A stretch of DNA of 64,000 bases, taken from assembly GCA_964035545.1 (NCBI GenBank), contig OZ037766.1:15180722-15244721 (forward strand). The letters are read 5' to 3'. This document shows, piece by piece, positions 2,134 through 34,800 of this stretch (position 1 is its first letter; each line of letters starts with the position of its first letter). The translations under genes were made by a program, and so were the position numbers. The notes under the pieces were generated by a model, which searched no databases, had not been told where the DNA came from, and saw only the letters and a program-made list of their open reading frames with translations. The stretch is from Bugula neritina (lineage: Eukaryota; Animalia; Bryozoa).

Positions 2134-4602
2134 TATATAGCTGCACTAGTGGGCTCTGTCTTACTGAACTCCAAATGCTCCAAATTATGGGTTGGAACAC
2201 ATGCCTGTACGTTTATGAAGGCACTGGCTCATTTGTATTAACATATTCACGTACTTACACACCTATACTATGAAAATAACTAAGCCACCCTACTATCTAA
2301 TATTTCTATATATCAAAAAAATTATTATAAATATAAAGATATGTATTAAAATAGATAGATTAAATTTGTAATTTCAAACAACATCTTATCTAAAAATGCC
2401 AAACACTGTATAACTATATATATTTTTTAAAAGCATTTGTTTACATGGCATGCCTGCAAGTCAATGAAAATATTTAGAGAACAGTAAAAAGAAGCATATA
2501 AATTTCAGAATAGTTTCTTCTTTTCTGAGATGAATATTTTGGAAATGTCCCACCATTCAACATTTAAATTAAGTCTGTAAAAAAAATTTCACAGTGTATT
2601 TTCAATAAATAACTATTCTTGCAAGCTGTTTGTATACTAACATTCCTAATAAAGAAATGTTTTTGGAGCATTGTAAATTGTATACTGCTGCATTGCAGAA
2701 AAAAAATCATCAAAAAAAGCACTTTTCAGCCAAAGCAACTTATTTTGTTTTCAAAAAAAAGTTGAAATGTACATTTAGTACCAGCTGTAAAGTATAGAAA
2801 GAACGAACTATGTCATAATGACTGCATTCTTATGACACTAATAAAATTAAGATTGGCTTTACTCCATACGGGTCTTGCTCAAAGGTGGAGTTCTAAATAA
2901 TGCTACTAAGTTTCACTAAATTCCCAGATAATACTTTTTATATCAAATCATTTGGCTTTACTGATTTAGCTATATTATGTACATTTTGTACTTATTTATC
3001 TCTAGGTCAGATTTCAGCCATATATTTGACCGCATTGCTATACTTCCTTTGTGCCAGCATTCTCTCCTTTATATCTTTTCTGTGGTTTCTAATAATTTTC
3101 AGTGGTATGTCAATGTAAACTATGTGAACCATCAGGCTATCTCTTATACAATGCATGCTGCTATAAGAATAACAGCAGCTGTTTTGTATTCAATCAACCT
3201 CGTTGCAAGAATTTTGTTTGCTTGAAGCTCTCTGTTGAGTAGCTGTCTCTCTATATTACATAACTGCTTATTCAAGAAAGTGCACGATGAGAACTGTCCA
3301 ACTTTAGCTGTCTAACTTAAATTACATTATATAGGATTACATCACTACATAATAAGCTGATTAAACAACACATATAAATCGGCCAAAAACACTACACACT
3401 TGACTAGCTCTAGTTGAACTCATTTATATTTCGAGTTTTTCACATTACTTGAACATGCTTTAGCCAATTTGTTGCATTATTTTTCATCCATACATGTAAT
3501 ACAAAGATTTAGTATATTATTTTTTAGGTTTGGATTGTCTAATAGGCAGGTATCGCAGATATTTAATCAGACTGCGAAGTTGCTTAGAGAAGCTCTAAAT
3601 CCAATGATAGTATTTTATCAATACACGGAGGTTAATAAAACAATTCCACTTCAATGAACTTTGACCTAGTTAACTAGACCACTGTAAAATGGCATGCCAG
3701 AACAAACACAAACCAGCTTGCAAGAATAATTATTCATTGAAAATACACTGTGAAAAATTCTTTTACAGACTTAATTTAAATGTTGAATTGTGGGACATTT
3801 CCAAAATATTTATCTTAGAAAAGAAGAAACTATTCTGAAATTTATATGCTTCTTTTTACTGTTCTTTAAATATTTTCATCGACTTGCAGGCATGCCATGT
3901 AAACAAATGCTTTTAAAAAATATATATAGTTATACAGTGTTTGGCATTTTTAGATAAGATGTTGTTTGAAATTACAAATTTAATCTATCTATTTTAATAC
4001 ATATCTTTATATTTATAATAATTTTTTTGATATATAGAAATATTAGATAGTCGGGTGGCTTAGTTATTTTCATAGTATAGGTGTGTAAGTACGTGAACAT
4101 GTTAATACAAATGAGCCAGTGCCTTCATAAACGTACAGGCATGTGTTCCAACCCATAATTTGGAGCATTTGGAGTTCAGTAAGACAGAGCCCACTAGTGC
4201 AGCTATATAGTGTACGAGCATGTTATTATTGTTCTAAGAGTTGAAAGGTTAGCAGCTCTAACCAGACTGGTTACAGTCAGCAAAGCAAATAATAATGACA
4301 GCTGCCAGCTTCAGATTTGCTCAATAACCAAAACCACAAATATGCTTTGAAGTTTTCTTTTTGTGCCATTTATCATTAACAAAATTTTTTAAAAAATTTC
4401 TGAAACTGCTCATATGTGTACCTATGCCAAAATATTAATCTCAGAAAAAATGAAACTTATACTAGTAGTAGTCTTCACTCAAACCATACATCTCTACTTA
4501 TTTTATGGGCCTTCTATATATCATTGAGACTGCCCCCAATCCCTGTAGGGGGAGACAACTTTAAAATACAAATTCCTCTGGAGGGATGTCTGAAACCCCT
4601 CT

Positions 4603-20600: not shown

Positions 20601-22770
20601 AGTGAATAAGTTGAACCTTTGTATAATGAGCAAACTCATTAAAAATTCAAAGTTTGGCTGCTACTTAAAACTTTAATTATGCTATATTAGCAGTTTAAAA
20701 CTTTTTTCATAAAAATATTACATGAAGAACTTTAAAGAAAATAAACTTTAGCGCATTTTTGTGGATTCGGTTACCAAGCAATGCTGAAGTGGCACTTCAG
20801 CATTGATCAGCAACCAAAACCACAAAATTGCGCTAAAGTTTATTCTGTTCAACATTTTTCATTTTGAGAGGACGCAACTCCTAATTGTAAGGGGGTCATT
20901 GGGATCTCTAAAAAAGGCCTATTGAGACTTTCGAACCGTGATGAAAAACCATAACGACTCGCATATATCTATTTAGCTCATATAAAAACGACGCTGTCCT
21001 TAATGTTGCAGGACCTTTCACAGCCTTTGCTTGCTATACACACAGTTAAAACCTGCACATAGAAGTATACCACATAGTAAATTTTTACAAATTATGAGCA
21101 AATTTTAAGTTTTGGTCGTAACTTGCTGATGTGTACTATATAAAATAAAATGACTTGAATATGCATCTTGGTGTGAAACCGTTTATAGCTGAACCATCAG
21201 GTGTTAATTGAAACAAGAATGTAATACAGAACTAGTGAGCATCATTACCCTGGCTGAGTGTTCCCTGATGATACAGAACTGTGAAGAAATTTCTTTAGAG
21301 ATGTTTCCAGTTTTTTTCCAAAAGGTATTGAATTATTTGCCAACAAGCATTCGAGAGACTGGCTGATACAGCACTGTGCATCTGCTAGATCTGATAAAAT
21401 TCCCACAGTAGGTTTTGGGAAAGAGTCTGTGACTAACTCCACATAAGCTCCCAGAACATCTGACAACATATCTAGATCTTTGGCAAACTGGTGGCCAAAA
21501 CTATCCTGTAAATTCAATTAATCAAGGGTAAAAGGCTACCACATAGAAAACAATGATATCTGTCCAGCTTGGTATTCCCAAAATTTTGACTGGCGACTAC
21601 TTTGTGAAAAAGTAAAAGCAGAATTACATTATTACACTATTACACTATTACATAAAAGCTACAAAATACTTCCATACAACAGACCTTGCGACAATCCATG
21701 AGCAAGACCATGGTTTGGAGCTGGTGTTGTTGGTTGGTAGAGACAGCAAGTACTTTGTCAAGGTAAGTGTTCACATAATGCTGTTGTCTGCATGAGAGTA
21801 AGAGTTTGAGTAGAAATGATCTGAGAACAGGGGTTGGATCCACAACTTCTTGACTGTTGAATAAACTGAACTGTCTGGTTGTCTCTCCACCCCTGGCAGT
21901 CACACAGTCCAGCAGCCATCTTATGATCTCATCATCAGGATCTCTTTCCTTTTCATTGAACATGATGTCAGACACAAATTTCATGAAGAATTTGTTCATT
22001 CTCTTTCTCAAGTCTTTGAATGAAGTCAGTTGCTGTTCACTATAATCAAACTAACAACTTCTAGTAATTTAATATTAATACTAACAAGCAAAATAATATA
22101 ATAAAAATCACAAACAGGAAGTCAAGTGGGTTGAACATATTTTGTAAAAACATGCACTATAATGTTACCAAGTTTAACAAAATATTGACAATAATAGAAG
22201 TTATTTCAACACTACTAAAAAGTGAATAGAATTTCATACATACTCTATGTTATCCTCTGCTGGATTATAGTTATATGGTTTTGGTATTTCTTTGCCACAG
22301 TTATCCACAGAGCATATTTGCACTTCTTTTACACAGCCATCACATATAAAATGATTGCAAGGCAATCTGATGGGTGAATCTAAAGCTTTATCACAAACAG
22401 GGCAGGTTTTAGGGCAGTTGCTAAAACACAAAACATTCTAAGCTTATTGGCCGTAATAAATTAATTTGCATGAAGCAAATCCCAACAAATGCTTGAGTAG
22501 TGACAGACAAACTCTCTCAGCATATGTAATATTTTGCAAGAGAACATAATATACCTAAGTATAAAATGCAGAAGCATTTTTGAACTTACGAATATAAATT
22601 CTGGATATTGTCTACAACAGCTGCCCTGAGAAAGTCAATCACTTGTTGAAATGTCTCACAACTCTGGAAATCTCTACCAGTAACCATCTAATAGTAACAA
22701 ATTACATATGAAAGATAAATAAGTAAATAAATAAATAAACAAATATATATATACATATATACATATATAT

Positions 22771-22837
<67 letters not shown>

Positions 22838-25800
22838 GGAATGCAAGTTGTATATTATCATAAAAGGAAGCTGGCAGATTTAAGCATGAAGCAGTACAAA
22901 GTTTTATATTATTCATAAACTTGTCACTGTAAATACATAATTATATACTTATTAAAATTATTGTTTTAGCAGTTTAGTTTAATAAGCCAGACTTTTTTAA
23001 CGAAACCCTCGTCTATAAATTCCAACTGACTTCGTCCCAAGAGAATAAACAGCTAGAATTTAGTATAAAGACTAAAGGGGAATAGTTATGACGTACAAAG
23101 AATCAAATTAATCTGCCTACCCTTGTGAAGAAGGCAAGTTTGTGCATTGGTCTCTTCCCAGTCTTTTTGACAACAGGACTTGGGATGATGATATGCTCCA
23201 CATAAAGTTTTTTTACGTTGAGACGAGACCATATTCTCCTGCAAATAGTAGGCACACATAGGATAGAAGACATGCATATTTGACAAACAACTTCATTACT
23301 GGTATACAAGGCGATTTTTTGGCTGTTGATAACTTAACAAAATTTTGTTATCAGTATATATAAATATCAGTATATATGAATATAACTGCCATGTTTTTGA
23401 GCCTCTCTCTGTTTATTACAGCTATTAGCATATATTCTATCCATGTGACAAACGAAATACTAACTTAATAAAGTTAAAAGCAAACATCAATAGAAAACAG
23501 AATTCGCTTGCAAGTTTTACAAGATGAGGTCTTGTTTAGAAAAGAACATCCTCTCTGATGTATATTATAGTGTAATAAGAATAAGTATATTTTTGATGCA
23601 AAACTGTTGCTCTAAAGTCTAAAAAAATTTGACTGGTAAATATTAAAAATAAAGTTTGATTGTATGCATTGAAGTAAATAGACTTCAAGAGCATTAGGAG
23701 TAAAAAAACTAAAAGATGATTTAAAATAAAAAAGGTGAGAGAAAGGAGTGTTGCTATGAAGAAAACAACTGGAGACACGCATTGTAAAATGTGTGAAGTC
23801 AGCCATCATCAAGCAAACACAAGTGAAGATGAAGCCAATAAATGATCTTTAACAGTGGCAGAGCTTCACTATTACTAAGCTAAATGTTGAGCCAGGTGTA
23901 AAAAAGTGCAAAATAGAAGCATATTACAAATAAATATACATTTTTTGACAATAATACAACAAAATTAGCAAATCAAGTATTGAAATCTGAAATTTTACAA
24001 CAGAAGAAAATTATTGAGTAAAATTTAACAGAGACATGGTAAGTTTTGCTTGAAGAGGTGGCGTAAAAAATGAGTTTTTGCAGGTCAAAGAAAAACATCA
24101 AATTAACCGATCATTCCATTGGTCAGTTAAAGATGGCTCAGACAACTTTCGTTTCTATGGCAACTGAAAAATGACAAAGGGCATGCATGTTATGCAGCTG
24201 AGACCCTCTCACCTGCACTCAGTTATATATTCCTCATTCTCATCTTCTTTGGAGTGGAGAATTTGCAAAGTTATCATCTTACATTGCTCTACTTTTTTAA
24301 CCCAAGATTCAGGGTTCAACATCAGTTCATTAGCTCTTACGTCCCACAAGGAGGTGAGTAAACAGTTCAGAGCAAGAAAGTCACATGGCTACAAGAATTA
24401 TATCAACATTTTTAACAATATAAATCAATAGCTCTTTCCAATAGGTCATCAAAGCATCAAAATGTATAAAAACCACAACATTATTTGTTAAAACATACCA
24501 CAAGCTCCTTTCCTTCTTTGATGGTGGATTCTACTTGTTTTTTCACTAAAGAAATGACATCACTATCTTCTTCAAGCAAAGCAAAGACTGCAGAGAGATT
24601 CTCAAACATAGCCTTCTGTTGTCTGTAAGCCACGTTGACGTGCACCAGACTGATGTCACCAAATACACTTCTTTGAATGCTGGTCATCAAGTAGAGGCCA
24701 ACAATCTACATCATAGGAATTACATTTGAAGACTACAACTTTTACATTTGTAAGAGATTATTACCAAATTGAATAATCCCGCAATTAGTAACTTTTATTT
24801 TTTAAAAACAATCTTGATACATTTTCCAACACCAGTAGAGATTCAAAAGCAGTCATACTAATTAGGATTGTCTGTTATTATCATAATGGAAAAAGCTGCA
24901 TATGCATCATAGTCAACTGAAATTGTGTTATAAAAGCAACTAAATGTTTTGAAATCAAACTGTAAACCATAGTCGCATATTTTAAATTAAGAGAAATAAA
25001 TTCAGTACTCATGATTAAATAGAGAGCTCAAAACTGTAAATATTTCTATGAAATAAAGATTGTAATATACCTTATGTTCGTGTGAGTTGATACAAGGGTG
25101 GACCATGTAGATGAAGTCAATAAGGTAACAGTCCAACAGTTCAGTGACTCGCTTTCTGTTCTCATCATCAAAGAAGACTTTTCCAATAGGAGACATTTTG
25201 AACTGCTCAATTGAAGACTCGACTCCAGCCCCTGAAACAGTATATGGCTTTAATATAAACATTCCCAAATATCTTAACACTAACAAATTTCTACAACATT
25301 TAGTTAAAAATCATCCAGAATAAAATACTGAAACCAATCTCAATGCTAGAACTATAAAGCTTGCATAGTAACATAGTAAAAGAATGACATTAAGGTAACT
25401 TGTTTATTATAAAACATCAAAATTCTACTGAAGTGACTCACCAAAGTCCAGGTTGACATTAGCACCCATCAGGCTTTCAATAGTTTCCTTCACAATCCAT
25501 GAGAAAGGAAGTCGAGTTGAAAAGTTGTGAGAGCCATAACCAATCTCCTGGATCCTGTACTGCTGAGGTAGTTTCTATGATAGACAAACCATTACACTTT
25601 GATCTCTAAACATATCTCTAAATTTATAATGTTTTTATTTGCATGCATTAGGAATCATTCCAACAAGTATAAGTAATGTAACAAATATTAAGGCAAAATG
25701 CAGGCATTAAACAACATACAGCTTGGTTGTTGTTGGCTTTGTTGTGCTTTGTAATATGACTGAACTTCAGTCCCAGCTTGTGAGCTTGTTCAAATATCTG

Positions 25801-28800
25801 TAGCCAGAGAGAACTGAGGTCTGATGGTCCACTGATAGTTACCAGGTTTTGTCTGACATCAATAAATGATATGACAGCAGCCATTGCAGGTGCAAGAGCT
25901 CTCTCCAAGGCATCTTCTAGAGAGTGTCTAAAATTAGACAATAGAATGCAGTAGCATTTTAAGAACACAGGAATTTTGACAAAGTTAAAGCAAAAATACT
26001 TTAATATGAATTTGTCCGAAATTGTATAAATGTTTATATGATTAATAAACAGTACACAAACATATCCCGATAATTAAATTTATAATAATACCATTATATA
26101 AGGCAGCTAATCTTATAACACCTGGTTATTATGTTATATGTTGTAATAAGAGTAGACAACATGCTCGCAAAAATTTCTCTCATCTTTGCAGTCATAAAAA
26201 CACTAAATTTGACCATAATAACATAATGGGAAAACGTTTTTTAAAGAACACACCACCATAACTTTCGATCATAGAAAACTGTGAAGTGGAACTTTAGCGA
26301 TAGATATTACACTAACAAACCATATAAATAGTAAAACTTAATACCACAAAAGCTCAAAATACATTGAAAGTATGCAATAATCGACTTACCACAAACGTAA
26401 ACGTGAAAAACAGAGAGATTCGCACCTACTTATGCATGCAATAACTAGAGTATCAACTGTTTTATATTCTATTACTAGCACTTTCCCATTACACATTTAA
26501 CTTGTAGACAGCTACATAGAAGTAGAAATAAGATTCATGATAGATATAATAAAACACTGCTAGACTACCTCATAGTTTCAGACTGCTTCATATTGCTAGC
26601 TTTAGCTGCGTCTGCTGTAACCCAGTGGGAGGGGCTAAACTCTTCTTGTTTCTTCAACAATTCATAGACGTGCTTCAAGAAGAGACCAGCAAAATCTGTA
26701 AACCACAAAAAGGAGACCTGATTTTATTGTCATTGCTACATGCTATGAACATAGCAACACCACAGCCTAGGAGCATGAAATATCCACATTTATTCATTAC
26801 CAATACCACTACACATTCAACAGAGTTAAACTTTAATTTGTCATACCTGATAGCTCAGTAAAATAGAAAATTATTCTAAAAAGATAAAAATTCAAGTGTA
26901 TTTCAATATTTGATAAAAAATATTTTGTCTTCCAATAACTTGCTTGCTGAGTAAAACCTACTACTTCTGTTCTACAATTTCAAATAATAAAAAAAATCGC
27001 AACTCAACTTCATGATTTGATGGTCTAAAAATACCAAGTACTAAAATTTACCAACCAATAAGAACAGTTTAAAATACTCATCTAACCAAACTGTTGCAAT
27101 TTCAGATTAGCATAGTAAAAAAGGTATAAATATACTGCCAAATTATTAAAAACCTATAATTAACCTTAACTCGCACCTAAGCTCTTGAATCTATGTTATA
27201 TACTGCGAGTGGAAATGTATTCTAATAGTAGAATGAGTGTCATGTTTCTTGCAATGCACAATTTACGACTAAACAGTATTAATTCTAACATAACTATATG
27301 GTTTAAAATAGATCGCTGAAAACCTACTCGCAGTATGTGACCCATTATGTTTCTTCACTCTTAAAAATACATTCATCAGTTCCCATTATTCAAATCAGTT
27401 ATTGGAACATAAAAATCGCTATAATAATTACATTCCTGCAAACATGTTTTAATTTAAAATCAAACAATAAATTCCCAAAATACAAACATTATACACTGAA
27501 CCTGTACTTTTATTACTAAGTACTTTTTAAACTAGAAATGTAAATACGATTCATTTCTATGAGTGACTAAGTAAGACACTAGCCTTTGTCTTTGGTGAGC
27601 AGTTTCTTCAACAGAGCCACTCTGTCATACTGACAGTCTGCTTTGATAGCAGACACTGCAGCTGGAAGACATTGTATAATAAACAACAACATGTCATCAT
27701 ATGATGCATCTTCACTATCAGTTGATACGGGTTCCTCCGGAGTAGCTCCAGTCTCCTCAGCAGCTACTGGTTCCTCTAGAGTATCACCCTCCTAGAAGAA
27801 ATGAGTAGTTGGTAATTTACCAAAAAATTAGTATGTCTTAAAGACTTATTTTGGCATTAATGAATAATTTATTACATGTACGTAGCAAAAGTATTCCAAA
27901 ATTAATCAGAACATAAATAATGTGAAGTAGAAAAGTTGTTTAGTGTTGACCAAATAATAGCAAAAATCACCTTTTCTATTCACAGCTACATGCTATCAAA
28001 AGTAAGTTGTCTTTAAAAACCCTGACATGAATACAAAATCCACATTTGATAACACAAATTTGAGAATGAAGCTACAGCATCACCAGCTTACATTAATAAT
28101 CATGAAGTCATTGTCGTCATCTTCGTTGTCATCATCATGAGCTGTGACATCAGAGGGAACAGGATGGAGTTGTCTCATCACTTTCTCAATGATACCACTG
28201 GGAGTCAACTTCAAACATTTGCTGAGTGATGGTAGTCTTATCTGTGGTGACTTAGGATCATCAATGTGAACACAACTCCATTTTCCTCCTAGCAAAATCA
28301 TATAAATAGATTTATTTTTCTTTTTTAATATTCAGCAGATTCACAACAAAATATAATCTTTAAAAAACATGAAAAGTATTGCATCCTATATATCATACAT
28401 TAGAATAAAGGAGTTGCAGCACTAACATATAGCGACCAAATAATTTATAAATAATATATGTGTACTATTGAAGCACACGACTCAGCACCATTCACCTGTG
28501 ACTAATATGAATCAGCACAATACCCACCTTGGTACCCTGTGAAGGACTCTCCTCTGGGTAGATTCAGAAGTAGAACTGTGTGTGTTTGAGTAGCTTCATT
28601 TTCACGTAATCCAACTGCAGCCTCACTTTCACGCTGAATGATGAATCTCACCGAGTCGAGTAGTTCTATATTTTCATTAGCAGATTCACACTGAATCAGT
28701 AGGATTTGTGGTTTCTTGTTAACTTTCTCATACTGAGACCTGTAAAACGCAGTCAGTTGACTTATTGTTACAATTGTTATAATATAACACCTGACAATTA

Positions 28801-31800
28801 AAGTACAGCAATGCGTTTAGCCGACACATTGAGTAAGTAAATCACCAGAAATACAGGGATAGTTAAATTTCAGCCACTTATATTGAATTAAACAACAACA
28901 TGCATGCCACAGATTTTAAAAATAGTTTGAAGTAAGTTTAAGCTAAAGTTACTGATTTAAAATTATTAACAATTGTTTTATTTGCTGACTCAAAACTTCT
29001 AACCTGACAGCCTCGGTAAATTGATCTTCTTTCACAAAGTCTTTGAGAAACATGTTTTGTATGTCCAACAGTAGACCAGACTGGCTGAGACTATGAGAGA
29101 GAGATGTGATGTCAGCAACATTCATCAGCTCAGCAAAAGATGTCACCTGGTTATGAAGATGACCAAAGTTGTGTTGGATATTTCATTTATTGCAGTGAAG
29201 TATTATATAAACAAAATTGATTTGTTCTAAATACGTTTCAACAGTATAAAAAAACAAATATATGTATTATAAACAGCAAGCAACCTGAAGAAATATGGAG
29301 GAGTCTCCAGCCATTGGGATCATATGCTGCAGATATTGTAGGAGAGTCTCGTGGTACTGCTCTTCCATGTAAGTATTCTGTATTTGTTTAGCCTCAGATG
29401 CCAGCTGTGTTTTGTTGAGACGTAAAACAGACTCCCCCGTAGCACATTGAAGCAGATGGTATTTGGCACATTCCAGAAGCTGCGTAAACAAGTAGAAAAT
29501 CGTAGTCGAATATTGAAATAAAAAAAGTTTAACACTACAAAAAATTAACAAATCTATATAAAAATGTAATTTATTTATACCTCTGAAGAATTAGATTCTC
29601 CATCAACCTCTTCTGCAGCTTTACGCACAGCCAATGCAGTCGTCTCTGTGCTGTACCCAATGAACGCCGTCTCTGTACTTGAATTCTCAAAGTATTGCCT
29701 ACAAAAGAATATAATACATAAAAATAAATGAAGAGTACAATAATTTGCAAGTCCAAATATATTATTATTACTAATTAAAGTGTAGGCTGTAAAAAGTTTT
29801 AGCTACAATAGACAAAATGATCAGATAATTATTATTGTAATTTAAAAAGTACGTTCACGTTATCAAGATCAAGTAAACAAAATCTAGTAAGAGACTGCCA
29901 GAAGTGTCAACTATCAAAACTGTAAAATTTAATGCAAACAAACGGATTTTAAGTTAAAAATGCCATCTAGTAGTTATTAGTTATTACAAGTCACTCTGAT
30001 TTTTAGTCGTTTAAAAAAGAAAAGAAGACAACATAAAAACAGAATTACCTGTTCTCCAAAGCTACAGAGTCTATCACCCATTCCTCCAGCCGGATTTCTT
30101 CACCACAATCTTCGACGGGGCACTTCCTCTCCATGAGTTCATTTTCAATTTTCTCTTTACAACATGAACCAATGAAGTGCCGTTGACAAGACAGCTTGTA
30201 AGGTCTGGTCAGCTCTGCACCACAACCTTCACATGATGATGGGCATACATTCCTGTGAATAACACACAAGAAGTAAAAATAATCATATTCTGAAAACACT
30301 TGCTAACTACCAACTATGGCTTTTTTCTGGGTTTTTACTATTGCAAAAATAGTTTTCTAACCTGTAAATCAATTGAGGTGCAACAAATTTCTGGGCCCAG
30401 TTCTCCAGCTCTCTCTTCACTTGCTTCTGCTCATCTGTGAGAAGGGAAGTAGCAGAGACATAGTGTTTCTCTAGACGGTTAATGAGAGGAATTGGAAACT
30501 GGGAGTGTACTTTGTTCTTGTCGGCTATCACTACCAATCTGTCGATATATGTACAAACAATAATATATTACACTTCTAACGTAGTGCCGAAACCATCAAG
30601 GTTCTACAGTTAGTAGCGGTATGTTAAAAATAAAAACGTCAATAAAAATCCAGACACAAGGTTAAATCATTAAATGAATATTTTATTAAACTTGAACAAT
30701 AAATCAAGAAGAGCTTTGTGTAAAAATATCTGCTCAATCAGTAAATTGTCTTTCATGTAACTTATAATATACAGCAGGTGAATAACTGAAAACAGTAAAT
30801 CTTTCATACATGCAACAAAACTATGCTATAATAAAAATTTTCCGCTATCACTAGCTACCTGAATTTGTCATCAACAAAAGTCTTGACTCTGTGAGTACCA
30901 AGCCCAAGATCCACAAACTTCTTGTCCCCCCAAGTAGAGAAGTACTGGTTGAGGGCGTCATATAGACTCTCGTACAGATCATCAAGATTGAGTAGGATCA
31001 CAGGTTTACCCATGTCCATGCATGTCTTTATTCTGTAGATGTTGTGACACACCTACACAGATGTTATATTCATGAGATAATTAGTGAAACAAACCATCAT
31101 TAGAATGTTTACTATTGTTTGCATACAAAAATGACCATGTACAGTGTCATTATCTCCCCTCACCTGTGTATATGAAACATCATCTCTGAACTTGCTACCA
31201 AATACTACTTCTGGATGCATGTCTTTAGAGTGAAACTCGGTGAGAATAATACTCAGGACACTCAAGTTCTCAGTCAATATCAGCAGATATCGACTTTCCA
31301 TTCTACAATCACCTATATATGTTTAAACTACTGCATATTTATCATGTTGAAAAAGTATTTGTACTTTTAAAGTATATGTTAGTTAGCATAGACTGTTGAT
31401 GATGGCATTTGACAATTAACTTAGGCCTCAGGCTATCAGCTAAATACTTAGTACTAATACTCTGTAGCGATTCAATACACTTTGAAAAGATGAAATAAGA
31501 ATGTCACTGATGTGAGAAAATGCACTCATGTACACAACAGAGAAAATCTCACACGCATAAATAAAATAAAATATAGAGAAGAAAAAAAGGTAATATAAAC
31601 TGTATGAATAGCGATGGCAAGAACTGGCTCATTCTACCAATAGACAAACTACCTTTCATCAAGACTTAGCAGGACTCACATACTATACTAACTGACCCTT
31701 CAAGAGCTGTATCTTCTCCAGAAAGACTGGATTGAATTAGTCCAATTGAATCCACTGGAGGACGGCCATCTTCCTGTGGCTCCAGATCCTCCATATTGCA

Positions 31801-34800
31801 ATATTTCTCAAAGATCGTCATTGGATTAAATTTTTCAGGATCAAAACCACCAAAGTTTCTGCGTATACTATGCTCAAGCTGGTTTCTGTTTAAAGACTTG
31901 GTGTTGTCAGCAAAGTTCACCACCATCTTCATCAAACTAGATAACACGCAAACAATTTGGAGTATTGTATAATAAGTAATACAAACTGTCAAAATGTTAA
32001 TAGTTACCAAACTTAATACAGAACATTGTAACAAAACAGGTATGCAGCAAAAACTCTAATCACAGACAATAACACAAGACCATGTGTAACACTTTTTTTA
32101 AGAATTGGCAACAAACCTGTAAAAATCTCTCAACCCAAAGAATTCTGTGAGGTCTCTCTCCTCGGGCTTCTTTGCGTCACAAATTTTAAGATAACCATTA
32201 GCCAAGGGGACAATGAAACGACCTACATTAGTGTCTCCGCTTTGTGAACCTCTGCATATTTCCCTAGCAATATACAACTAGATTGAAAGAACAACGTAAT
32301 TTAAAAACAGAACATAATTCTTCATAAAGAAAAAATAAATACTTGGCAATCTGTTCCAACTCCAAAGGTTTAGGAGTTCCTCTCTGGACAAATATGCCAC
32401 GGTTCATCTTGGCTGGATCCAGTGCCCAATTAGAGATGCCAACAAAAGCACACTTCATGTATGGTTCTGGTGTAATACTACTGTCTTCACAACCATCTTC
32501 TAGCAGAGGGTGTAGAGTCTACCAAAGAGTATTCAGTAGTATAGAGTGTGATAAGTCTAAAGCTGAAAAACCAATTTAAAACATTTGCTGGTGCAAGTGT
32601 TGACTACTTTATGACTAGCTTATGAGTTATACCTTAAGAGGCATGTTTTCAGAATCTTCAGCCAATCCGACTTCATCAAGTACCACAACTGAGACAAATG
32701 CATCCAACTCTTGGTCCTTCTGAAAGTTAGCACAGTGATTGAACACACCGACAATTCCAGCTGGTGTAGCGTGTCTGCTGCATTGAAAGGCAGCCATATA
32801 TGCCTAAAAATAGATTATTATAGAACATAGAACACACATTGCGATGTCATGTATACCAGAAAGCAATTGGAATGAGCCATCAATAAAATAATCAAAACAT
32901 CTGAACAATTATTAAAAAAAAACAATATGCAATAATATTCTCCTATAAAAACCTGTTTCATTTCTCTAAAGATAGCACTCTCTGATCTTTTTCCTTTCAT
33001 TGCATCCACAACCATAGCTTTGGACAGAGATTTAGAGCTGCCAGGTTTTCCAACCAGGAAAAGAGGAATTCTATTCTCAATGCAGACAATCATCATGAAG
33101 ACATTTTCTTTCAGAGCTTTGTTCTTAGCAATGTTCTTGTGCACATCTGTGTTCACTACTTCGTTGATGAACATGTCTTGACATCTAAAAATAATTTTGG
33201 TAAATTAAATGGCTCAATACGTAAAAACAATATTGTTGAATGCTGTTTCATGAGATGCTTGAATATACATGTATAGTTAGAAAGAAATCAAACTTTATCG
33301 TTAATAAATGAAGATATTGATACAAAAATGGTACATTATAGCACGACTGTCACAAATTCTAGTACTCAATTTATTAAATGCTAGTAATAGATTAGTCATT
33401 ACTGTACAATATCACACAGTAGTGATTCTTCATAGTAGTTGCTTGCTGTAATGAGATATACATATGTGAGTCATTTTACTTAATTTATTATACACTATAT
33501 ATCTCTAAGTTTTAGCTATTTTTCAGTTAAGCCACTATGTAGGGGAGAGTAGGGATAGTTGAACCACATGCTCTAAATTTTCTCCTTTAAATCATGGCAC
33601 TATTTTACTTCCTTTACTTAAGAGCGTTTCAGGTGAGCTACCAGACATATAGAAATATATAAAATCAAAGCAGAAGTTGTCAGGCTAGCGAGTATTTTTC
33701 ACATCTTTTGCATAAAGAATGAACAAACTAAAAATTGTTTTTTAGAAAAAGTTGCATAACTTCTCAAGTTTTAAGAGCCTAATCAAATAAATTGAGGCAT
33801 GTATTGTCGACATAATTTCAAAGCTGGGCAATGACCTAAAGTTGAAGAGATATCTCATTCACAGCAGATATTGACAATAAATTGTATCGAGACAGAGTGG
33901 GGCTAGTTAAACCACCCAAGAAGTTGGGTGAGTTGAACCAAGTACAACTTGCCCCATTAATTATTTTCACTATGTAAATTATAATTGGGCACACCAGTTT
34001 TTGCATTTAAGTTTATATTTTTCATGATTAAACGTTTTCTGACACCAATACATAAATCCAAACAAACATTTAGTCCTAAACCAAATAAAAATGTAAGTCA
34101 ACAGTGTAATTAAACTATCTGCAAATGTTTTTAGAATGATTCAAAATTTCATGGTAAAAACAAATAGAGAGGAACAGATTAGGAAAACTTAATTGCAGCA
34201 ATGAAGGCAAGGCAGTAGCGGAAATCATCCGCCATTAAGTTGAGAGCATTTAAACAGCCCTCTAAAAAGTTGGTTATGCTCAACCATACCAAGTATTTTC
34301 TAATATCATATGAGAGGACCCTACTTCATATATGTTACTTGTTTATAGATAAATTACAAGAAATCAACATCTGAAAGGTTTCTTACAAGTTTGCTGCTAC
34401 TGCTTCGGTTTTAAAGCGTTTTCTGTATCGCCTATGTATAAGATTTTAAATAGTTACCATGACAGATTACAACCAGAGTTTCTGCCATTTGTTCATTCCA
34501 ATTTATTCTGATTTTTTTAATGATTTTTATTGTCAATCTTCAAGAAATTGTTTTTCAACTTGCAAAAAAGGTAAAACAATTTATATATGGGAAAAATGGT
34601 ACTGGTTCAACATTTCCACGGGGCGGTTCAACCTGCCCCCTACTGGGGCACGTGCCAAAAAACTTACAGTAAAAAAATTAACTCTATCTCAGTAAGTAAA
34701 ATGTTTATATATTTGATTTTAATGGACAAAGACAGCAACATATGACTGATTTTTATGGTGCTGGTCTTTGGATTGGCAAAAAATTTCTTCAAAACCTATG

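Follow-up and report, generated by a model that had tools for sequence, protein, structure and literature searches.

RNF213, the moyamoya disease gene, encodes a major cell-autonomous immune ubiquitin ligase. Two further systems are relevant for comparison. In dynein, the buttress, a coiled coil from AAA5S, supports the stalk, and RING domains normally carry an E2-contacting Ile, Val or Leu between their first two zinc ligands and a Lys or Arg linchpin after the eighth. Vertebrate RNF213 has a single RING, as the original prediction had stated, which in the mouse protein lies in the E3 module (residues 3940-3999). Two RNF213-specific insertions, IR3 in AAA3L and IR5 in AAA5L (mouse residues 3063-3103), were read by the authors of the mouse structure as regulatory; the AAA core ends at residue 3405, and the RING, which has a Leu at the linchpin position, was not needed for auto-ubiquitination in vitro (PMC7311170).

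Here we analysed a window of 64,000 nucleotides from the bryozoan Bugula neritina, in which an RNF213 gene on the minus strand carries an additional RING-like exon within its AAA core. This module exon (30049-30252) is 204 nt long, has phase 2-2 and comprises 68 codons including the split ones, with 67 whole codons. It is bordered by AG and GT (...cacag before 30252, gtaattct after 30049). At its start, a split Arg codon receives two bases from the upstream exon (...LIY followed by ag) and one base, g, from the module exon, and its last two bases start the next Arg codon, which is finished by the exon beginning at 29698 (QYFENSSTETAFIGYS...). A 109-nt intron (30253-30361) separates it from the upstream AAA5 exon (30362-30538, 177 nt, phase 2-2), encoding ...VVIADKNKVHSQFPIPLINRLEKHY...WAQKFVAPQLIY, and a 350-nt intron (29699-30048) from the downstream exon (29581-29698, 118 nt); both introns have phase 2 and GT..AG ends, and all of these features lie on the minus strand. 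The original prediction of a 204-nt phase 2-2 exon between two named RNF213 exons was exact in coordinates, phases and translation.

Both junctions, 30362|30252 and 30049|29698, were found with GT..AG ends in spliced RNA contigs from four runs of four studies. A further joint (X1), 30256>30395, which includes 29 foreign letters, was taken to stem from the transcript of a paralog or a sibling strain, and alternative splicing was rejected for it. A pseudo-exon or chance open reading frame was also rejected, given the RNA junctions in four studies, the splice sites kept in eight paralogs and dN/dS values of 0.06-0.23 (five pairs). We are highly confident of the identity and expression of the exon: it is real and transcribed, belongs to the coding sequence of an RNF213 paralog and looks constitutive.

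The host gene has a dynein-like six-AAA core collinear with that of solved RNF213, and the RING of its E3 module follows the AAA core on the same strand, 7.6 kb downstream of the module exon. Significant PDB matches of its AAA core exons were to RNF213 chains only. Three exons fall in order on the mouse chain 7oik_A (residues 2701-2762, 3107-3158 and 3212-3265). The second of these segments is matched by the AAA5 exon at 30362-30538 (E 4.7e-11), which scores 41-45 bits against solved RNF213, compared with 75-78 bits for the AAA4 Walker A exon. The third is matched weakly, though collinearly (E 0.01), by the exon that follows the downstream exon; the downstream exon itself (39 aa) gave no match against the PDB on its own, and the gap to the mouse protein was bounded with the next exon for that reason. 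Between the flanking alignments there are 53 residues in the mouse and 117 in this gene; the surplus of 64 is close to the 68 codons of the exon. The near-contiguity of the flanking segments in vertebrates, as given in the original prediction, was about right. The predicted position in a late AAA5/6 part of the core holds for AAA5, just after IR5, and not for AAA6: the module site lies in AAA5, approximately 55 residues past the end of IR5. On sequence grounds, the module would protrude where the AAA5 small (lid) domain begins, immediately behind the helix next to the FPIPLINRLEKHY motif on its C-terminal side. A RING inside the ATPase ring of RNF213 was not found in the literature searched, and mouse and human RNF213 do not have the two-RING layout.

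The module is not confined to this gene. The 216-Mb genome contains nine RNF213 paralogs, and eight of them carry the module at an identical position and with an identical phase, each module exon lying 110-1450 nt downstream of one of the nine AAA5 exons and all of them bordered as ag|..|gt. The ninth paralog (L017) has no module, and one uninterrupted phase-2 intron occupies the site. Foreign contigs (L028/L029, L030/L031, L032 and L034) also contain the module between homologues of the same two exons. In L028, L030, L032 and L034 the homologue of the downstream exon comes after the module; in L033 and L017, which have no module, it comes straight after the AAA5 exon. In two foreign contigs, a further module (B) is present three exons upstream of the site of the module described here (A). 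The module is kept under purifying selection.

The candidate zinc ligands, numbered along the 67-codon translation, are C7, C10, C22, H25, C30, C31, C44 and C49. Across 27 sequences, P17, C22, H25, G28 and C44 are invariant, and conservation reaches at least 90% at C10, C30, C31 and C49. The resulting pattern, CxxC-x11-Cx(1-3)H-xxGxCC-variable loop-Cx4C (CxxC in some relatives), departs from the C3HC4 spacing (CxxC...CxHxxCxxC...CxxC) in that the fifth ligand lies two positions away from its usual place, directly next to the sixth. An adjacent Cys pair would be unusual as ligands of one zinc site, and the ligands named here are putative. The original prediction had called the RING possibly degenerate. 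This reading was rejected, as HxxGxCC is invariant or nearly so in the 27 sequences and dN/dS is in the range given above; the pattern is a fixed, non-canonical one under purifying selection.

A search with RING models had been proposed as a check, and Pfam RING models missed the module of the window, with no match at E values up to 10. Among the 27 members, nine matched zf-RING_2, seven zf-C3HC4_3 and fewer the other RING models, with weak best E-values of 5.5e-4 to 0.07 depending on the family, and none appears to reach a Pfam RING cut-off. The zf-RAG1 model (PF10426) gave 22.6 bits (cut-off 22) over profile positions 4-18 of 30, corresponding to the CPVxxC knuckle, and was matched by four of the 27 members. 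Membership in zf-RAG1 was rejected, as the match is partial (15 of 30 positions) and the His pair of this C2H2-type finger is missing.

To obtain a view of the fold, we used an AlphaFold (AF2) model of the module alone (pLDDT 75, pTM 0.54). The matches listed by Foldseek were nearly all RING or U-box domains, with a few p62 ZZ domains ranked lower (TM 0.39-0.67, probability at most 0.98, E at least 0.08). VIA-align gave Z scores of 5.2-6.9 over 51-66 of the 67 residues, which is middling for a small domain and below the level of 8 that the tool regards as clear. The top matches, all of them RING or U-box domains, included TRAF5/6, RNF125, TRIM69, TRIM21, Prp19 and Nse2, the best being 7l3l_A (Z 6.9, 64 residues aligned). 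A search for look-alikes in the ESM Atlas brought up nothing beyond unspecific clusters of Cys-rich, RING or IBR type, none of them above 0.81. The module is predicted to fold as a RING/U-box-type cross-brace of approximately 60 residues with eight conserved putative ligands.

Such a fold might be that of a working second RING E3 site, which would recruit E2~ubiquitin to the ATPase ring and give the protein two RING-type centres besides the RZ finger. Conservation of all eight ligand positions under purifying selection is consistent with this, as are the Pro retained after the seventh ligand (CPV), a predicted fold that matches E2-binding RINGs and U-boxes, and an extra copy in L034 that keeps the canonical HxxCxxC spacing and scores 24.3 bits against a Pfam RING cut-off of 27. 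The E2-contact residues, however, do not fit: most members read CxGC, with Gly at the contact position, and Gly or Asp follows the last Cys. The failure of Pfam RING models on the module of the window also speaks against a working RING, as does the fact that mouse RNF213 works without its own (PMC7311170), and we consider this reading somewhat unlikely. Because of the Gly between the first two Cys, the missing Lys/Arg linchpin and the dispensable mouse RING, we tentatively favor a non-catalytic docking or regulatory role, to which we would give slightly less than even odds. The module would then serve the motor as a zinc-stabilised knob for docking or regulation, and not as a classical E2-activating RING.

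The module might also be a regulated cassette, in which case the motor would occur in one form that has it and another that lacks it, depending on tissue or immune state. Its 2-2 phase fits this, as the reading frame survives skipping, and to that extent the in-frame skipping suggested by the original prediction is possible on paper. Against it, only inclusion junctions are among the joints listed for the four runs and the skip junction 30362>29698 is not, a result that cannot show absence given that contigs drop rare forms. We regard this use of the exon as quite improbable. That the module is strongly conserved is no argument against regulated use.

We then compared the module with the canonical RING exon of the same gene (22244-22420, minus strand, 177 nt, phase 2-2), which is the likely parent type. 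This exon matches Pfam zf-RING_UBOX at 26.4 bits (cut-off 25.2), together with many weaker RING models, and is one of nine canonical RNF213 RING exons in the genome. BLASTP of the two exons gave 18 identities over 51 positions (35%, E 8e-8, single comparison), with CP..C at the start, L..P..L.C and HFI in between and C.V..CG.EI at the end shared by both, and it confirmed the difference at one ligand, HFIGSCC in the module and HFICDGC in the canonical RING. Aligning the 27 modules with the nine canonical RING exons, hhalign returned a probability of 98% (E 2.5e-13, 52 columns). The alignment proposed originally, of two exons both in phase 2-2, is therefore borne out and exceeds chance. A profile of the module scores 24-40 bits on eight of the nine canonical exons and at most 19.1 bits on any PDB chain. 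In a genome profile search, in which the 15 best candidates were scored, the eight modules were followed by canonical RNF213 RING exons and one chance-level match (E 2.45). Reciprocally, the next best match of the canonical exon used as query was a module.

The canonical E3-RING of RNF213 is the nearest relative of the module. Common to the two are CPxxC at the start, LxxPxxLPC, the HF/YI motif, CxVxxC or CxxC at the end, an aromatic tail and exon phase 2-2, and in neither does Lys or Arg stand right after the last Cys. The module differs from the canonical RING in its shifted fifth ligand (HxxGxCC in place of HxxCxxC), in having Gly in the first CxxC where the canonical RING has a hydrophobic residue, in a longer loop of variable length before the last ligand pair, and in a conserved WxVDxxALENR tail. 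The ...ENR with which the modules end recurs at the end of the RING exon in the paralog that lacks the module.

The module could instead stem from the RING exon of another gene (TRAF-, TRIM- or RNF168-like) through shuffling, its likeness to the RNF213 RING being only general. Weak PDB matches to TRIM34, RNF168, TRIM5, AMFR and TRAF6 are in line with this, as are the best fold match, TRAF5/6, and the CPVxxC end that produces the zf-RAG1 match, as it does for the finger beside RAG1 and TRAF RINGs. Furthermore, on a profile of the canonical RING the modules score 14-40 bits, comparable to the best unrelated RING, RNF146 at 34 bits, which does as well as most modules. The module-side scores point the other way, with 24-40 bits on the RNF213 RING exons versus at most 19.1 on solved RINGs, and no other RING of the genome was among the 15 best candidates scored; the common phase, the extra CPxxC start, the aromatic tail and the ...ENR end in the module-less paralog likewise tie the module to RNF213. 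We therefore find an origin in another gene very unlikely. These module-side scores, together with the phase and the gene that both exons have in common, the CPxxC start and the tail, make it probable that the module originates from the RING exon of RNF213 itself, in spite of canonical-side scores on a par with that of RNF146.

The timing of this event can be narrowed down. The tree of the two RINGs that had been suggested as a check was run, and a single branch with 100/100 support parts the modules from the canonical RINGs. A recent copy of the RING exon of this very gene was rejected on the basis of this branch and of the module being shared by eight paralogs and foreign contigs, so that the apparent copying of the gene's own exon does not hold in its recent form. 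Exon duplication or shuffling, as originally read, is the best supported explanation, through the hhalign probability, the profile scores, the shared phase 2-2 and the empty intron in one paralog. The insertion is deep, because the most divergent module-bearing paralog, L008/L016, is about as distant from the gene of the window as the module-less one (61% and 57% identity in the AAA5 exon, respectively), and it appears to predate the expansion of the family. These same distances would also allow a module ancestral to animal RNF213 and lost in vertebrates, the ninth paralog and the L033 lineage, but this is most unlikely. HMMER, run against 1.84 billion representative proteins, gave 21 matches, all of them exon fragments of 53-190 aa from metagenome or Logan contigs, with no full-length protein of any phylum among them. 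Moreover, mouse and human RNF213 have no room for the module, and what L017 has at the unoccupied site is an ordinary phase-2 intron.

In the explanation that we prefer, the ancestor from which most bryozoan RNF213 paralogs descend would have acquired a copy of the symmetric phase 2-2 RNF213 RING exon within a phase-2 intron of its AAA5 unit, at a time when the family had not yet expanded. We put the probability that identity, expression and origin of the module are jointly correct at roughly 75%. A more far-reaching proposal is that the AAA5 unit in the expanded bryozoan family is a port that has repeatedly accepted RING exons (modules A and B), and that the embedded RINGs may equip the motor with a site for handling ubiquitin or docking partners, with the nucleotide state of the ring directly gating a second E3 or recognition activity. 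This is speculative and, taken as a whole, unlikely; to our knowledge, no AAA+ E3 has been described with such a nucleotide-gated second activity.

The finding bears on the role of the RNF213 RING and on the communication between the ATPase ring and the ligase. It represents a natural experiment in which a RING was copied into the motor, selected through a nine-fold gene expansion and copied again in some relatives. This points to a selectable role in binding or regulation that a RING of the RNF213 type can fill outside the E3 module. It also marks an AAA5 surface that tolerates a whole extra domain, and thereby provides a defined construct for structural and biochemical groups. Finally, it would make a clean textbook case of symmetric-exon shuffling, in which one paralog has kept the target intron without an insert.

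Compared with vertebrate RNF213 (mouse and human cryo-EM structures 6TAX, 7OIK and 8S24), the AAA core exons of this gene are collinear, and both have one canonical RING further downstream; unlike this gene, the vertebrate protein lacks the 68-codon AAA5 module. IR3 and IR5 resemble the module in being lineage-typical inserts in the AAA ring. They are, however, loop or alpha-beta inserts conserved in vertebrates, whereas the module is a separate zinc-finger domain with its own exon, present in bryozoan-like genes only. The combination of a RING and a zinc finger of the TRAF6/RAG1 type provides the best fold match to the module and shares the CPV..C knuckle, but the sequence scores of TRAF6 to the module amount to 11-16 bits, and the module stands without a TRAF or RAG context. 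The dynein buttress offers a parallel in architecture: like the module, if the latter is indeed placed in AAA5S, it is an appendage of the fifth AAA small domain of a dynein-like ring, in the form of a coiled coil in dynein and of a small zinc finger here.

The RING-like module is encoded on the minus strand by an exon of 204 nt (30252..30049), bounded by an AG acceptor on its 5' side and by GTAATT on its 3' side. Its first base closes an Arg codon left open by the preceding exon (...FVAPQLIY, then ag|g), while its last two bases open another Arg codon, whose final base lies at 29698 (QYFENSSTETAFIGYS...). Since Arg codons are split at both borders, the phase 2-2 originally predicted for this 204-nt exon is correct, as is its first translation over the 67 whole codons. 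The canonical RING exon of the gene (22420..22244, minus strand, 177 nt) is likewise phase 2-2, in line with the prediction, and so is the AAA5 exon directly upstream of the module (30538..30362, minus strand, 177 nt). Together with the neighboring introns 31697|31302 and 30859|30538, both of phase 2, this places the module in a run of phase-2 introns. A long TA-rich microsatellite (22674-22916), reading IYIYIY... in one frame, lies within the intron that directly precedes the canonical RING exon.

Inclusion of the exon in RNA, which the original prediction had proposed as a check, was examined by aligning Logan contigs to 27600-33400. They stem from four runs, each of a different study; one is an oligo-dT metatranscriptome, and the other three were guessed to be RNA. 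Exons were covered and introns empty. Both inclusion junctions (30251|30361 and 29697|30048), with GT..AG ends, were present in all four runs, and individual contigs span from the upstream exon across the module. No module-skipping junction appeared among the joints listed for these four runs, as assembled from contigs, which lose rare forms. Divergence between the RNA contigs and the window amounts to a few percent, suggesting a sibling strain or allele. In one RNA run, a high-depth contig at 30256-30395 carries 29 other letters where the upstream exon has its final 33 bases, after which it runs on into the module. This joint probably derives from RNA of a paralog or of a sibling strain rather than from alternative splicing.

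Three exons of the gene match solved RNF213 chains in order and almost exclusively. The GKPGSSKS exon corresponds to residues 2701-2762 of mouse 7oik_A and 2779-2841 of human 8s24_A (E about 1e-21), the AAA5 exon directly before the module to mouse 7oik_A 3107-3158 (E 4.7e-11), and the second exon past the module to mouse 3212-3265 (a weak, collinear match, E 0.01). The AAA4 Walker A lysine, which we take to be K2736 in mouse and K2775 in human, fits chain offsets of 0 and +40; without it, mouse positions could be off by as many as 13 residues. From anchor to anchor, mouse has 53 residues versus 117 in this gene, an excess of 64 that matches the 68-codon module exon, and the two flanking segments are thus roughly contiguous in the vertebrate protein, much as proposed. 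In mouse RNF213, the AAA core spans residues 1775-3405, with the AAA5L insertion IR5 at 3063-3103 (PMC7311170), so that the anchor alignment places the module in AAA5, about 55 residues past IR5. Of the late AAA5/6 placement first put forward, AAA5 therefore stands and AAA6 does not. By analogy with other AAA+ units, FPIPLINRLEKHY may mark the end of the large domain, with the next helix starting the small (lid) domain, which would put the module where AAA5S begins.

Judged by the AAA5 exon, the Bugula genome contains nine RNF213 paralogs. In eight of them the module lies directly downstream of this exon, with splice sites and phase conserved throughout. Five module-bearing loci, including the window's gene, cluster at C2:15.07-15.43 Mb; the others are located at C2:26.88 Mb and on C3 and C4. 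The ninth paralog (L017, C2:26.10 Mb) has ...WAARFNSNQ, a single phase-2 intron of about 880 nt and then SKSSEIEKIFIGYC..., with no module, and this intron is the empty target site. The canonical RING exon of this only module-less paralog (L017/L025, C2:26.10-26.11 Mb) is the most divergent, ending in ...ENR as the modules do, and the gene may be the orthodox RNF213 ortholog.

The dN/dS of the module is 0.06 against its 99%-identical twin L002, 0.22 against L003, 0.15 against L004, 0.18 for L005/L006 and 0.11 for L007 versus a JGI contig. The twin (G000:C2:15066631-15069831; module 15068131-15068331, plus strand; 99% protein identity, dS 0.10) sits inverted at a distance of about 142 kb and comes with AAA5 and RING exons of its own, so the entire gene was recently duplicated within the C2 cluster. 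The module of L003 (G000:C4:18801398-18804562; module 18802898-18803062) is shorter, ending after CGEEIWLKNR without the conserved WxVDxxALE tail, and keeps the splice phase. For the most divergent module-bearing paralog (module at C2:26879467), the nearest canonical-type RING (C2:26844480-26844623) lies about 35 kb downstream versus 8-12 kb elsewhere, reflecting either much longer introns or the RING of another gene.

The module and the canonical RING exon share 35% identity by BLASTP (E 8e-8), and profile-profile comparison gave 98% probability (E 2.5e-13) over 52 columns, reaching past the ligands. Searched against the whole 216-Mb genome, the module profile recovered the eight modules and then, among the matches listed, only canonical RNF213 RING exons, five of them at E <=0.007, plus one chance-level match (E 2.45). 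With hmmsearch, it scored 24-40 bits on eight of nine canonical RING exons and 19.1 bits on the best of all PDB chains, hundreds of RINGs included. Conversely, the first match of the canonical exon outside its own kind was a module; from the canonical profile the contrast was less sharp (modules 14-40 bits, RNF146 34). The shared phase, the additional CPxxC at the start and the ...ENR with which the RING exon of the module-less paralog ends fit a symmetric exon duplicated intragenically into a phase-2 intron, and these features, the profile scores and the empty site support the predicted origin by duplication or shuffling, from an RNF213 RING exon. In a maximum-likelihood tree of both RING types, also proposed earlier, 27 modules and nine canonical RINGs are parted by one branch with 100/100 support, so the copy predates the paralog radiation.

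A RING HMM run, another suggested check, gave weak RING matches in some family members and none in the window's module. The sole Pfam match of the latter was a partial zf-RAG1 at the CPVEDC knuckle, covering 15 of 30 profile positions with 22.6 bits against a cut-off of 22; across the 27 members, RING models were the commonest weak matches (zf-RING_2 in nine, zf-C3HC4_3 in seven, with weak E-values). The candidate ligand pattern begins with CxxC and a stretch of eleven residues, followed by Cx(1-3)H, xxGxCC, a variable-length loop and Cx4C or CxxC. In the family alignment, P17, C22, H25, G28 and C44 are invariant, and conservation reaches at least 90% at C10, C30, C31 and C49. The one-ligand difference noticed at first is real: the fifth ligand is shifted two places and adjoins the sixth (HFIGSCC versus canonical HFICDGC). 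The suggestion of a possibly degenerate RING did not hold, as the shift is fixed across the family rather than a defect of this copy. An AlphaFold model built from the 27-row alignment (mean pLDDT 75) matched almost exclusively RING/U-box structures in Foldseek and VIA-align (TRAF5/6, RNF125, TRIM69, TRIM21, RNF146, Prp19, Nse2), with TM 0.5-0.67 and Z 5.2-6.9 over 51-66 residues. These predicted-fold matches are consistent with a RING/U-box domain, at scores not strong for such a small domain.

HMMER, run against 1.84 billion representative proteins, returned 21 module matches, all exon-sized ORFs of 53-190 aa from ENA, JGI or Logan contigs, with no full-length protein among them. Four independent foreign contigs carry the module between the same two exons; in L033, a long contig whose AAA5 exon is more distant (57% identical), the downstream exon follows 96 nt past the AAA5 exon, with no module. 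The JGI contigs bear the tag AY690838, which is the accession of the Bugula neritina mitochondrial genome (PMC2678162), and a fragment from JGI matches the AAA5 exon of the window's gene at 100% identity. The 190-aa metagenome fragment P0011, a module-like start joined to a bacterial GrpE-like tail, looks like a chimeric bryozoan and bacterial assembly. A full-text literature search found no paper describing this module-in-motor architecture.

Two foreign contigs (L030:2853-3038, plus strand, ENA ERZ4903308; L034:2255-2437, plus strand, Logan SRR25569789) carry a second module copy, placed three exons further upstream than the usual one and flanked by the ...SSLSGEDN and ESRYLLILTEN exons, in phase 2-2 with ag/gt borders; their genes would hold three RING-type exons. 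The second copy is absent from the Bugula genome, and the counterpart of its site in the window's gene, the phase-2 intron 31303-31696, is empty. In L034, this copy keeps the canonical HYVCDNC spacing (Pfam zf-C3HC4_3, 24.3 bits). The copy at the usual site (4279-4500) reads HYVCPCC, which looks intermediate between HxxCxxC and HxxGxCC and hints at the order of the ligand shift.

RINGs carry an E2-contacting Ile, Val or Leu between their first two Cys. Canonical exons read CP[VIM]C here, versus Gly in most modules, and the residue after the module's last Cys is Gly or Asp, not the Lys/Arg linchpin. Given both features, along with the dispensability of the mouse RING for auto-ubiquitination, the module would more likely be a zinc-stabilized docking or regulatory knob on AAA5 than a second catalytic RING, a reading that keeps a lower probability. 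In mouse RNF213 itself, Leu3986 takes the linchpin position, and auto-ubiquitination persists in the enzyme lacking its RING (PMC7311170).
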